Positions 3,500 to 23,889 of a stretch of 64,000 nucleotides of DNA are shown here, piece by piece. Under the pieces are notes generated by a model that saw only the letters and a list, made by a program, of their open reading frames with translations, searched no databases and had not been told where the DNA came from. Every line of letters starts with the position of its first letter. The stretch's first letter is position 1. The stretch is from Dimorphilus gyrociliatus (Eukaryota; Animalia; Annelida), in NCBI GenBank assembly GCA_904063045.1, contig CAJFCJ010000006.1, positions 3,612,408 to 3,676,407 of the forward strand, read 5' to 3'. The translations under genes were made by a program, and so were the position numbers.

Positions 3500-6400
3500 A
3501 TGGAAGACGAGAAGAAAAAGGAAAAATTTCGACGAGCTTGGATGAACCACATGAAAAATAAAATGTTTATTATTCAACGGTATTTTAAAACCATCCAGGA
3601 TAGTAAGGAATCAGAAGGTCAGTTAATTTATAATTGTTTAGCATATAATTTTTCCTTGTAAAATATGAATACGCTCATTTTCTTTAATCAAATCAGGTTC
3701 CGACATGACGCTCCAAATAACGGATCTCAACCGGCAGATGGCACGTCGACCCTCACCTGCTGGTAGCAGTAATAACTCGTTGAACGAAGGTATGACATAA
3801 TCATTTCAATTTGAGTTGAATGTATTGGACAATAATTCATTATTACCTTTAATTGATTTATTTTAAAACTGTCTATATTTAAAACAATCTTAAAGAATTA
3901 TAAAAGTTTTATAGTGGTTGTTTTTATTTTCTTAATCGAGTGTTCTTTGCACTTTTTGTAATTTGTACCTGACAATTTCTTTTTTTCATCTTTCTATTAC
4001 ATCCGGTTCTCCATTGAATTCAAAGGAAATTTAGGGCGCAAAAAGTTTGAAAAAGTGAACAGCTAGGGGCGGCTTTACTTTTTAGAAAGTCGACCAAGAC
4101 TAATAAATCACTCCATTATCTTCTAGATATTCGATTTGTGTCAAATCAGGAGTACAATCGATATTACGTAATGCTAGGCGAATTACGTAACTGAGTGGAC
4201 GGTAGGCCTGAGTAAACGGTTGAAAGACTTACTATTTGAAAGGAAACGGGGAAGGGGTTGAGAGAACATAACACGTTCGGAACACGTTCGGAAGGGGTCG
4301 TGTTTGCTTGTGACGGGGTACCAGTCTATTCAATTCTATTGGCGCCATTCGACTGACTGACCGTCGGGCTGGCAGCATGTCACAATATCTAATGGAATTA
4401 TGATGAGCAGGGCGGACTCCAGTTGCATTCCTAAGCCTGTCGTTTATTTATAAGGATATTCTTATTCTCTTTTTTCAATATGCTTGGCGAAAGTGTTAAA
4501 AGAAAAGCTCAGAACATTCGCTGATCAGAGGCGGCGAATGTGTACAGTGTAAGCAAATCGTATATAGGCTCGAATATGAAAGGAGGCCGAGATGAAAGAA
4601 GAACGTGCGCGAAGTTCATCTCTACCGCCTTGTGAGTAGTTATCCGACTCTTAAAATTGAGTTTCAATTAATAGTAGAAAAAAAGTAGCTGCACCTGGCT
4701 CTCTTTTCTCTTTATTTCTTCATTTCTTTCTCTTCGTCTTTCTCTCTGCACCCACTTCTTTTCTTTATTATTTTCTTACTGCGAGCGTTAAAAGGCGGTG
4801 AAGCATCGTGAAAAAAAAGGTGTATTACATCTGCCAGAAAAAATAGCCCCCCAGGCTATTATACCATTTTATTTCGCCTTCTATTCGTTCTTTTTTTATT
4901 CAGATCGGCGACAATCACGTCTTGAAACGAGTCGACCTTACAATTATCGGAAATCGGGTGGAGGAGAAATCAGTGAAAATCTGGCCGATATTTCCGGACC
5001 TCTAACAGAGCATGCTTTACTAGTCGCTCTGCAAAATAGCGTCTCATCAAATAGATGTTGCGTGAGTATATATAAAATTGAACCTATATATATATATACA
5101 GGTATATATGACTATATGCTATCATATTGGCTTGTATTACATATTAACCTGGTTGATAGGCCGCTTTAAAACTTATAAAAAAGTTAACGTTTCCGAATAT
5201 TGTGACCTAGAAAAAGGGTTGATAGTCCTTAATGTCGTCTTAATTAGAAGTGTTTTCGCGAACGTCGTTAACGCAGCAAGACGCTTGACACGGGACGAAA
5301 TTTCCCGCCGATTTTTCATACTAATTGTCTATTGACATGAACCTTCACATTCCAGACTAAAATCGGAACGGTGACGGTGGTCTTGAATAGGCGTCAACGC
5401 CAACCGCCCCCACGGCTTTTGGAAGTAACGCCTGTTTGCTCCCATCTGCGAAATGTCGTTGACGAAGCTGTCAATCAGTACTTCGATACGGGTCAGAGTC
5501 AGACGATCATTTTAAGCGGATTATCGGGAGCGGGAAAAACGGACGCGTGCCGCCGAATACAACGCCATTTTTTGGACATTTGTGGCGGAGGTAAAGAAAC
5601 TGATGTTTTTAAGCATTCTTCCGCCGCATTAACTGTTCTACACTCGCTTACTACTTGTTCAACCCCTCTAAATCCTCATGCAAGCCGATTGGTAAGTACG
5701 CTTTTATTATACCAAGACACGCACAGAAATAGATAAGGGTGAAGATATAACCCTAAAAGGACTTCAATTATATCGCGTGATGACCGTTTTTTTTGTTGAA
5801 CCTTTGAAGAATCGGTCTCCTTTAAGCCTATACATGCTGGCGCCTAAAAATCTAGTTCGGAACGCCAGTGAAACGCCCAAGCGTTATTTTCTTACGCGTT
5901 GGTGAATACGTTACGTACTTCAAAAGCATTCAATTTATGCAGGAGAAATTAAAAACCGGAAGAGACCGTGTTTTGTAATTTATATTGTGTAGATATCTAT
6001 AAATATATATATACTGTATATATACAATATATACATAAACAGTTAGAGGAGTAAATTTTATAGCTGTTTTTTTGTGCCAAGTCTTATTTATATAGTCGAC
6101 TTTTAGAGGATTATGTCGTAGTACTAAAAGGCGCAAGACTCAACTCTTTTATTATTCCAGGGTTACTATTTAGAAAATCAAATAACGAATGGTGCTATAC
6201 AAAAGTTGCGAGTAACTTGCTATTTCTTTGATTCGGTAAGTTATCCATACGATGTCTTACTTTTGTGATTTAATTGTGAGATATTCTAATAAAAAATATA
6301 TAATAATATTATATACGACTCTTTCTATTGTATTCAATAAAATAGGGAAAGAGGTTTGAAAAACGTTCAAAATGACAAAATTTTAAAAAGCTGTCAGAAC

Positions 6401-20365: not shown

Positions 20366-20909
20366 GTTTTTAACTCTTATCAAACAAGAAAGCAAACTAA
20401 TTAGATTCGGCGGTTTGTATTCTCATACCTTTATGAGTCAACAACACCCACTTTTTGATAAGATAATTGAATATAAGTTCTATTTAGGAAGTGTTAAATT
20501 TCCCTCTTTAATGAACTATGAACATATTTGATTCAATAGTATAACAATTTCAATCATGCAGTTAATAAGTGTAGCTAATAATCCAAATAGTTTAACAAAA
20601 ACTTGAGTTTTTTTTGATGAAAAAGGAAACGGAAATTTGAAATTATCCAAATAAAAATTCATGATTTTAGATTTTTATTATTTTTAAAGATTTAATAAAA
20701 ATATTGGTTAAAATTGTTTACAAATTTTTACTAAATAAAATACGAAAATAACCTAGAAGCGAGAATAACGAGATCACAACAACACCAGCGCCACACAAAC
20801 TCAGTCAAGTTAAACAAAATTGGCGTCGTAAAAGCGGCCATCGATGCCCATTAATACGAATTCACACAAATGCGAAAATAATCAATCGTTTTGGGACCAA
20901 GGAGACGAT

Positions 20910-23140
20910 ATGACAACTCAAAGTAAGTAAATTTTAATTCTCGTTTTTCCCACTTCCTAGTCCTATTATTACCTCTATCAGTAAGGACTTGAAAAAACTT
21001 ACGTTCAAACTATTGATTGAACGATTTCCAAAAGATATCTAAGTAACAATTATACACTTCTTTGTCTTTGTCATCTTTCTTACTAAGGTAGTTCCGAAGT
21101 GACTAACTAAAACTATTACCGATGACTAAGCGGAAGCGTATTAGCTGTCATAGATTTTTAAAAAATTACTCTCAACAATGCTTTTTTTTTGTGAACATAT
21201 GTCAAGTAAAAATATATCAGTCAGGCTTTTTTTATGTAACATTTGTTAATATTTTATAAAAAAAAAAACAAATAAACAACAGTGCAACTACCAGAAGATG
21301 ACGAGGAAAAAATTCAACTAGTACGGCGTAGAAAAGAAGAACTTTTACGTGATATCGAGGTAAAAAATCTTATCTCTTATTTGGAAAAGAGAAAATAATT
21401 TGGACTGGTTTTGAAGAGAGTGAATAGAAGTCGTCCGAATGTTTTCTTTAACAGCTTGTCTTTATTGACGTTAATTTAACGCTAATTCCTCAATTCCCCG
21501 TAGCAAATTAAAGACGATATCAACGGAATAATTGATCAGTTAAGGATAATACAGCACGCGGAAACTGACGGGTTAGCATTTTACTATAGTCTATTTACAT
21601 TGATTTATTTACATTTCGTATTTATGCCTATAGGAACGTGCAGGATACGGAACAACAAAACGTAAATGCTTTAAGGAGTAGATTTAATACAGATGCGAAA
21701 AAAGTAATACGATACATATTTCTTATCGAAGGATATCATCATTTTTATTGTTTTGTAAACAAAAAATAGGGTATTGAAGCGCTTATTGAGCAGAAAGTTA
21801 TTAGCGATACTCCTGAATCGATAGCTCATTATCTCTTACATACTGGTGGATTAAGCAAAACGCAGATAGGTAAATATCTTGGTGAAGCTGAAGAAAAGAA
21901 TCAACAAGTTCTCAAGTGTTTTGTCGAAGAACAAGATTTTCAGGGAATGAATATTTTACAAGCGCTCCGCCAATTTTTATGGAGTTTTCGAATTCCAGGA
22001 GAATCGCAGATTATTGAAAGAATAATGGAACTATTCGCCGCACATTACAACAATAGTAATATCAGCGAGTTAACTAACGACGCAGTCTTTATGCTGTGCT
22101 ATAGTTTTATGATGCTCAACACAACTTTTCATAATCCTAATGTTAAGAACAAAATGTCTTTTCTCGATTATAAAAAATCTGTATGTGATTTAATGGAAAA
22201 AGAGCCCAGCTTAGGTTCTATCATGGAACAGCTACCTCATTATTATGAAACGTTGAAGAAGGAACCTTTCCATCTTAATTCCGACGAAACGGATGACACG
22301 AACATGACATTTTTTGAACCCGATAAAGAAGGCTGGATCTTCAAACAAGGTTAGTAAATTTTCATTATTTTATAACAGTTTGTAATAGCGACTGGATAGG
22401 GATATACAATTTAATAATGCTTCATTTTCCTATCTAACTATATATAAGGCAGATACCGCAATATAACTCGTAAATAAATATTTATTAAGATAATTAACAT
22501 TAATTTACATCCATTCGCTATTATTCTCTTGTCTTAAAAACAAAAACAAAAAAAAACGCTTGATAGAGAGCTCTTGTTCTTTTTCCGTTTACGAATTTTG
22601 TGGCAAACAGGAAGTGGTCGAAGTAAGTATAAGAAAAAACTTGTAAACTATCGAAAAGCTTGGTTCCCCTCCCGAAGTAATTGTTGTAATTTTCGTGGTT
22701 TTTTTTAAAAAAAAAAAGAGAAGGACTTTTTTATTAAATTTTTTTTACTTTTTAACTATTCTCGGGTCACTTTTCTCCTAATCCACCAGTTTTCCTCTCG
22801 TTCAGAACGTATTGGTTTTAACTAATTTCGTCACAATTTATTAAGTAAAACTTTATAAAATACTATATATATATATATATATATATTTAGTTAGTTAGTT
22901 ATCATTCAAAGGCTAAGTAATATATAAAAGTGATAATTAGTTATATTAATATATATGTATACACTGTAAATATAAATATATATATACTGTATATATATAT
23001 ATATATCTTACATATATAAAATATGGGAATGGCATAAAGATAAGATAGAATTTTTTTCATTCCATGCATGCTTTATTAAAAACACATACCACACGTACAC
23101 AAAATGTATTGATATAAGTTTGAATAGAATTAATATACAG

Positions 23141-23171
<31 letters not shown>

Positions 23172-23889
23172 GGTAATTAGATAATTAACTAAATAGAATT
23201 AATAATAAGTATAAATTATTTTAAAACAGTTTTTTCATTCTTAAATTAAAGGAAAGGGAAAAATTTCTAAGAGACTAATAAAAGAAATAACAATATTATA
23301 TTTACGATGATATTTTTATAATGAATAATAAGAAAACAAATAATAACAAACGGGAATAAGAAAACTTCTTGCATGCCTCTTTTTTTTTACAGAGATATAA
23401 CTTCGCTTTTTTTTGACCTCTCTCGCTTTAGTTGTATTGTAATTTTTTGTTATCTTCAATTGTTAGTAAATGTTTTCTTTTTTTTTTTTTTTTTAATTAC
23501 TTCTTCTAGGAGGAAATATTAAAACTTGGAAAAGGAGATGGTTCGTTCTGGCAAACCAGTGCTTATATTACTTTCAATTTGCCGCTGATAAGGAGCCAAA
23601 GGGTATAATTCCATTGGAGTCAGATCTTCGTGTTCGAGAGACGGATCCAGCAAATACTACGAAGCATAGACCAGCTTGTTTTGAAATTTATAGCGAAAGT
23701 AACTCAGTCATTAAAGCATGTAAAACGGGCGGAGATGGTAAAGTAAGGGAAGGAAAACATGAAATATATAGAATGTGTGCTCCTAATGATAAGGAGAGGA
23801 AGGAATGGATAGAATGTATAAATAACGCGATTCGAAGGGATCGAACACACTTGCCGGGGGGTCCAGAAATAGGTGATAAGACAGCTTAG
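20910..23889 (+). CDS. CYTH: Cytohesin (ARNO/GRP1/Steppke) Arf-GEF: coiled coil, Sec7, PH
   Basis: Coiled coil VRRRKEELLRDIE, Sec7 motifs GLSKTQIGKYLGE, FRIPGESQIIERIME and MLNTTFHNPNVK, PH EGWIFKQ|GGNIKTWKRRWF. The 1160-nt intron 22350..23509 splits the PH beta1-beta2 loop. Confidence 0.93.
22449..22469 (+). other. Candidate 21-nt in-frame microexon in the cytohesin PH loop (adds GRYRNIT)
   Basis: CTAAC branch-like motif and AG at 22447-22448, GTAAAT donor at 22470, phase 1 to 1, no stop. Confidence 0.4.
22611..22622 (+). other. Candidate 12-nt in-frame microexon in the cytohesin PH loop (gaagtggtcgaa)
   Basis: Pyrimidine tract plus CAG at 22608-22610, consensus GTAAGT donor at 22623, phase 1 to 1, no stop. 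Confidence 0.55.
22864..23163. repeat. (TA)n microsatellites in the long cytohesin intron (22864..22886, 23141..23163 and shorter runs)
   Basis: Read directly. Confidence 0.8.

Follow-up and report, generated by a model that had tools for sequence, protein, structure and literature searches.

The locus described here raises a narrow question: does the last intron of a cytohesin gene in the annelid Dimorphilus gyrociliatus harbour very short exons that would lengthen a loop of the lipid-binding PH domain of the encoded Arf guanine nucleotide exchange factor (Arf-GEF)? The gene has six exons on the + strand of the window, a stretch of 64,000 nucleotides (nt) from contig CAJFCJ010000006.1 (positions 3,612,408 to 3,676,407). 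An earlier note on this DNA had placed two candidate frame-preserving microexons in the intron and had proposed that they combine into four loop isoforms, an Arg-rich splice code for phosphoinositide targeting. Our comparison with a sister species separates the two candidates. Judged by it, the first is a chance pseudo-exon, whereas the second is embedded in a unique and exceptionally conserved block. In our interpretation, the block is a splicing element around an exon; some of the messages would include this exon and thereby encode a longer loop. We hold this view with as much doubt as confidence. The intron in question, in window coordinates, is the following.

Intron 5: 22350..23509, + strand, 1160 nt, phase 1, bounded by GTTAGT and TCTAG; it splits the first Gly codon of a Gly-Gly pair.

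Exon 5 ends at 22349 (..AAA CAA G) and exon 6 starts at 23510 (GA GGA AAT ATT..). The other introns of the gene measure 359, 144, 63 and 66 nt, and the median intron of D. gyrociliatus is 66 bp (published genome paper). In a protein alignment, the insertion point falls on the GG(G) of Grp1 and other cytohesins, in the loop between strands beta1 and beta2 of the PH domain, and in molluscs, vertebrates and this worm alike, genomic open reading frames (ORFs) read from the intron into 'GG..' at that point. At this level of comparison, by protein alignment and read-through ORFs, the data are consistent with the earlier claim that the intron sits where vertebrate cytohesins use a 3-nt microexon. The coordinates, the length of 1160 nt and the donor and acceptor features given before all agree with the sequence. 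The expanded intron also carries TA microsatellites (22864-22886, 22949-23018 and 23141-23164), and sister-species contigs break at such repeats.

How much weight can a short AG..GT segment in this intron bear? Of frame-preserving, stop-free AG..GT segments 3-51 nt long, intron 5 contains 23, where Markov shuffles yield 14.5 +/- 5; about 10% of the shuffles include one with a GTRAGT donor. An exon of the triglycine type (AG/GNG/GT) is absent from the intron, where the 3-nt segments are GAA, TAA, AAC and TTA. Both proposed microexons do have AG/GT borders, preserve the frame, as had been stated, and fall within the microexon size limit of about 27 nt; the predicted loop pieces GRYRNITR-G and GSGRR-G were reproduced. 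Nevertheless, from the sequence of intron 5 alone neither candidate rises above chance.

Contigs of relatives were recovered from the Logan collection by protein word searches. For species A, exon 5 with the first ~350 nt of intron 5 is represented by L004 and L014, and the last ~780 nt of intron 5 with exon 6 by L012 and L013. We take these four contigs to represent one species, an assumption based on their similar divergence and their origin from the same run series. Species B is represented by a spliced RNA contig (L001:1-1025, Logan SRR31837514). The encoded proteins are 94-97% identical to that of D. gyrociliatus. At four-fold degenerate sites the differences amount to 63% (exon 5, L004), 44% (L001) and 30% (exon 6, L012), and ordinary coding exons show 13-17% nucleotide divergence. 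Outside the conserved block, intron 5 is 45-76% identical, and its 3' two thirds are mostly unalignable. Two other contigs, L002 and L003, were considered as a distant short-intron orthologue of this gene and were rejected; they are orthologues of a second cytohesin paralogue on contig C7.

This comparison, a check that the earlier note had itself suggested, had opposite outcomes for the two segments, as candidate 2 is identical in species A while candidate 1 has lost both donor and frame there.

Candidate microexon 1, judged a chance pseudo-exon: 22449..22469, + strand, 21 nt, between ATAAG and GTAAAT.

The region of candidate 1 is 58-62% identical to L004, an identity like that of intron sequence without constraint. 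Species A has lost the donor GT (CTCGTAAAT vs GCCGAAATAT), and a 4-nt indel there disrupts the frame of the candidate. We treat candidate 1 as a pseudo-exon because of this loss and because segments of its kind are expected by chance in the numbers given above. The four-isoform model has in its favour that both segments have proper borders and keep the frame. It needs candidate 1, however, whose surroundings have diverged neutrally, which does not exceed chance expectation and which offers only a weak donor (GTAAAT) and a weak acceptor (ATATAAG). With candidate 1 the loop code of four isoforms falls, and we regard a combination of two real microexons as very improbable.

The second candidate and the block around it are the following.

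Candidate microexon 2: 22611..22622, + strand, 12 nt (GAAGTGGTCGAA), preceded by AACAG and followed by GTAAGTAT, with the donor at 22623; identical in L004 and L014.
Conserved block: 22597..22700, + strand, ~105 nt, 96-98% identical to species A in sliding windows.

Aligned with L004 and L014, the block shows four substitutions and one indel column in 105 columns, conservation for which P<=1e-10 even if neutral sites differ at a rate of 0.3. Candidate 2 sits at its 5' edge, and the AACAG acceptor, the 12-nt body and the 55 nt past the donor are identical between the species but for one C/A difference. Among the 3.2 kb compared at the locus, the sole other stretch of at least 95% identity is exon 1 (95-98% to L004). 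A repeat or transposon was rejected as the origin of the block, which is single-copy in the 78-Mb genome, and so was a duplicate of exon 6, to which it has no similarity. It is the sister-species comparison alone that lifts candidate 2 above chance.

The splice signals within the block are strong on the donor side. The donor of candidate 2 matches 9 of the 11 positions of CAGGTAAGTAT and thus has the best U1 complementarity among the donors of the gene. The 8-mer GTAAGTAT occurs twice on the + strand of the 64 kb; from this count, the chance that an unrelated 105-nt block would carry it is estimated at ~0.2%. On the acceptor side, a pyrimidine tract (22570-22589) lies ~20 nt upstream of the AG at 22609-22610 with no AG between, nor is there an AG in the 40 nt ahead of the acceptor, and no pyrimidine tract adjoins the acceptor directly. 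The tract region shows small indels between the species, a kind of variation that is usual in pyrimidine tracts. Read in phase from the acceptor, the frame stays open for 32 codons (P ~0.07 at the stop density of intron 5). We favour a splicing element because a rare consensus U1 site, an acceptor, a spacing by a multiple of three and an open frame coincide in one block. An Rfam search at E<=1 returned noise only; RNA folding of the block was no better than shuffles on either strand (z +0.6 and +0.4); its pairing with a patch at 22375-22403 or with the 3' end of intron 5 was not above shuffles; a metagenome scan with a 20-nt core gave 0 hits; and a scan for bacterial-type promoters and terminators, of no relevance here, stayed at chance level.

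We are highly confident that candidate 2 belongs to an element that is real and under selection, and consider it probable that this element is related to splicing. Whether it is an included microexon, with constitutive inclusion and a longer 66-nt variant counted in, appears evenly balanced to us. Inclusion would insert Ser-Gly-Arg-Arg and turn the loop KQ-GG-N into KQ-GSGRRG-N. What is left of the Arg-rich splice code proposed before amounts to the two Arg of this insert and no more.

The same acceptor may also serve a longer exon.

Alternative exon form: 22611..22676, + strand, 66 nt, acceptor of candidate 2 and a weaker donor GAA/GTAATT (GT at 22677); in frame and stop-free.

This form would add SGRSKYKKKLVNYRKAWFPSRR, a stretch of 22 amino acids (aa) with a charge of +9 that comprises four aromatic residues besides its five Lys and four Arg. 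The 66 nt carry a single substitution in species A, which changes Asn to Lys, and the 1-nt indel of the block lies downstream of 22676. With the 66-nt exon, the conserved block would consist of the exon and flanks of 14 and 24 nt; a conserved exon with short conserved flanks is the usual picture of a cassette exon. Ordinary coding exons diverge far more than by this single difference in 66 nt, which argues for a constraint on the nucleic acid itself, of the kind seen in regulated exons or regulatory elements and not at the codon level. An alternative terminal exon, reading through from 22611 to a stop at 22706, was also considered and is unlikely, as an indel shifts the frame in species A shortly before the stop, and the ATTAAA close by lacks conservation.

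Several observations weigh against an exon that is joined into mRNA, and they are best told together with the explanations that they would favour. Conservation is stronger downstream than upstream of the 12-nt body and exceeds ordinary coding constraint, and the constraint is therefore at the nucleotide level. A single independent species covers the block, so that the exon signals are inseparable from the surrounding conservation. Moreover, highly conserved non-coding blocks are common between the two species: around the paralogue on C7, 10% of the 100-nt windows are at least 95% identical, and conservation alone is thus no proof of an exon. The genome paper reports 944 intronic peaks in an assay for transposase-accessible chromatin with sequencing (ATAC-seq), located in introns significantly longer than others. 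The peaks, the frequency of such blocks and the nucleotide-level constraint would suit an intronic transcriptional enhancer or another DNA-level conserved non-coding element, whose exon-like signals would be coincidental; several of the conserved blocks near the paralogue have no ORF or Rfam hit. Such an element would, however, carry a perfect sense-strand U1 site with the chance of ~0.2% given above, and it would have to place this site behind an AG, at a distance that is a multiple of three and in an open frame. The only other equally conserved stretch in the 3.2 kb compared at the locus is an exon. We consider an enhancer rather unlikely. As an observation in its own right, two stretches of 300-400 nt upstream of the C7 paralogue (L002:4262-4576 and 5328-5753) are 100% identical to D. 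gyrociliatus, where the surrounding sequence reaches 70-85%, and contain no long ORF and no Rfam match.

The transcript and protein data are the second group of opposing observations. The published model of the gene omits the insert. Its protein (CAD5116195.1 = DgyrCDS5111, 417 aa) is identical to our exon translations and represents the skip form, with exon 5 joined straight to exon 6 (KQ-GG-NIKTW). The earlier proposal that candidate 2 is a microexon gains from the conserved block and from the best donor of the gene, and loses from a published model that passes over it. Searches of the protein collection with exon 5, with the 292-aa ORF P0001 of species B and with exon 6 retrieved solely genomic or intron-reading ORFs of close relatives. 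Besides the published model, no ORF of D. gyrociliatus or of a close relative in the collection extends over exons 5-6, and the 44-aa intronic ORF had no exact match there. In the RNA contig L001 of species B, introns 1-4 are removed and exon 5 runs 75 nt into intron 5, where the contig breaks off in a TA repeat. P0001, the ORF of this contig, ends KQG* at the TAG within the donor GTTAGT (window 22347-22355); it would encode a protein of coiled coil and Sec7 domain without PH domain.

These data allow for a decoy exon. In that case the AG..GTAAGTAT unit would engage U2AF and U1 without being joined, stall the removal of intron 5 and lead to a message ending ..KQG*, and thereby to a PH-less coiled-coil and Sec7 form of the protein. 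The intron-5 donor fits such a scheme, being weak and containing an in-frame stop, and it is conserved in three species. Just past it lies a further conserved feature.

Invariant patch: 22375..22403, + strand, 29 nt (ACAGTTTGTAATAGCGACTGGATAGGGAT), 26 nt past the exon-5 donor; contains UAGGGA and is alike in the window, L001 and L004/L014.

The genome paper adds that in D. gyrociliatus short introns are spliced out with greater efficiency and long ones are more often retained, and the absence of the exon from the published model is also as expected of a decoy. On the other hand, the retention in species B is seen in a single contig from a single run, which ends 75 nt into the intron and might represent ordinary pre-mRNA, and exon 6 of that species is wholly unassembled, which suggests low coverage. 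One contig cannot show regulated retention, even if it keeps retention of the intron in play as an explanation. A decoy would also leave the open frame and the frame-preserving lengths of 12 and 66 nt unexplained, though the openness of the frame is no more than weakly significant. On these grounds we judge a decoy exon unlikely.

The omission from the published model could also have a trivial cause, since exons of 12 nt are often missed by short-read aligners. If the microexon were constitutive and simply overlooked in the annotation, the GSGRRG or 22-residue insert would always be present and the GG form would be an artefact. The strong donor of candidate 2 would agree with this. The 417-aa skip form and the lack of a pyrimidine tract adjoining the acceptor do not, and a plain GG is what the C7 paralogue and almost all of the ~100 examined cytohesin loops show. 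A constitutive exon is accordingly quite improbable.

The identity of the gene, on which any functional reading depends, is firmer. Its coding parts are as follows.

Exon 1, coding part: 20844..20922, + strand; ATG at 20844, donor GTAAGT at 20923; the N-terminus matches P0001 and the published protein.
Exon 2: 21283..21359, + strand; start of the coiled-coil region; joined to exons 1 and 3 in the spliced RNA contig L001 and in the published protein.
Exon 3: 21504..21571, + strand; from L001 and the published protein.
Exon 4: 21634..21703, + strand; start of the Sec7 domain; from L001 and the published protein.
Exon 5: 21770..22349, + strand; remaining Sec7 domain, linker and PH strand beta1 (..EGWIFKQ and the first base of Gly); identical to the published protein.
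Exon 6: 23510..23889, + strand; PH domain from the second Gly, stop TAG at 23887-23889; identical to the published protein.

The 5' untranslated region begins at ~20770, upstream of the coding part of exon 1. By translation, exons 2-3 encode a heptad-like charged stretch. The Sec7 domain (Pfam PF01369, E=2.7e-28), the bulk of which lies in exon 5, contains the catalytic-Glu motif F-R-x-P-G-E as FRIPGESQ, and a C-terminal Grp1-type PH domain follows directly (exon 6; Pfam PF00169, E=1.3e-16). The closest solved structure to this PH domain is Grp1/cytohesin-3 (E=1e-35). These domains place the gene in the cytohesin family, as had been proposed before. In alignment with the Grp1 PH domain, K-T-W-K-R-R-W-F, Y-Y-F, I-K-A-C-K-T and the His are kept; Asn replaces Arg after GG, Lys replaces Arg in KEP(R)G, and Lys replaces Asn before the His. 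The numbering of the inositide-pocket residues follows the Grp1 structures. The Asn after GG is shared by both Dimorphilus paralogues (GGNI and GGNL), whereas nearly all of the examined cytohesin loops have Arg. By inspection, no Grp1-like cluster of Lys and Arg follows the PH domain as a C-terminal polybasic region; the protein ends ..RRDRTHLPGGPEIGDKTA.

The second paralogue lies on the minus strand of contig C7 (L006:1057-2067) and is 63% identical. It has a plain GG loop and an intron of 60 nt at the same Gly-Gly point. This short intron is in frame and stop-free in D. gyrociliatus, where its retention would add ~20 residues to the same loop; in the sister-species orthologue (L002), a stop lies inside it.

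What could a splicing element in the block of the longer intron do? We infer that the block is spliced into mRNA, by one donor or the other and at some frequency, and the following is put forward on that premise. The last intron of one of two cytohesin paralogues, which interrupts the Gly-Gly of the PH loop, has grown to 1160 nt and contains an upstream pyrimidine tract, the AG at 22609-22610, the body GAAGTGGTCGAA and the U1 site GTAAGTAT. The exon would most likely be included in part of the messages and convert the loop from GG to GSGRRG; use of the weaker donor at 22677 instead would place the 22-residue, +9 charged stretch in the loop. By a reasonable analogy with the vertebrate GG/GGG forms, a longer and more basic loop should make the recognition of PI(3,4,5)P3 less stereospecific and shift the balance to binding of PI(4,5)P2 or acidic membranes through charge. 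An insert of four residues, two of them Arg, or of 22 residues with a charge of +9 should disturb the pocket at least as much as one extra Gly does, and should bring with it a non-specific attraction to acidic membranes. The Asn after GG and the absent C-terminal polybasic region may bear on the effect, and the polybasic-aromatic stretch of 22 residues could stand in for that missing region.

The closest known system is the 3-nt microexon of vertebrate cytohesin-1, -2 and -3, a textbook case of a tiny exon that alters lipid specificity and cell behaviour. The family is the same, the same Gly-Gly precedes (R/N)-x-K-T-W, an intron lies there, and in both cases a frame-preserving mini-exon would lengthen the same loop. 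In vertebrates, the extra Gly shifts cytohesins from PI(3,4,5)P3-selective to PI(4,5)P2-binding and changes their location in the cell (PMC6314551). The worm insert is built differently, with 12 nt (Ser-Gly-Arg-Arg) or possibly 66 nt against 3 nt (Gly), the sequences are unrelated, and in the worm both inclusion and lipid effect are predictions. In Drosophila Steppke, conversion of GG to GGG weakens PIP3 binding, and the protein is described solely as diglycine (PMC4640550); shared ancestry of the splicing event is therefore not indicated. In the literature searched, the GG/GGG microexon appears for vertebrates only; splicing at this site was not found outside vertebrates, nor was a paper that combines Dimorphilus and microexons.

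Candidate 2 also resembles the neural microexons that depend on eMIC/SRRM factors, as it would be a tiny exon that keeps the frame within a structured domain, with a strong donor, a displaced pyrimidine tract and conserved flanks. Unlike these, it lacks a UGC in the 40 nt ahead of the acceptor in both species, a further point against its inclusion. A 24-nt microexon of eIF4G in the same genome (L018:247-270, C6:1579746-1579769; CATCAG/GTGTTGCCGTCTATAAAATCTTGG/GTGAGA) has a UGC 6-8 nt before the AG. Decoy exons are known from retained introns of human erythroblast genes such as SF3B1. As in those genes, a conserved exon-like unit would lie in an intron that is retained in sister-species RNA, except that the retention rests on a single contig here. 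A decoy in D. gyrociliatus, if real, would mean the regulated production of an Arf-GEF without PH domain, in a genome that has adapted to very short introns.

Other animals, too, vary at the Gly-Gly point. An mRNA from another animal (L015:330-360, Logan SRR23076770) carries a 15-nt insert, GTACATCCAAATTAA, at the same position (KQ-GTSKLSG-RIKSW); the insert starts with GT and may thus stem from an alternative donor. A filarial nematode cytohesin has a long and different loop at the site. It is a tentative idea, and one that we consider less likely than not, that the Gly-Gly point is a recurrent splice dial, exploited independently through Gly in vertebrates, SGRR or 22 residues in the worm and TSKLS in the animal behind L015, each retuning the membrane targeting of an Arf-GEF. 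The annelid mini-exon, if real, would suggest this loop as a preferred position for tuning membrane recruitment by splicing, and GG, GSGRRG and the loop with 22 additional residues would form a natural series for relating loop length and charge to phosphoinositide selectivity.

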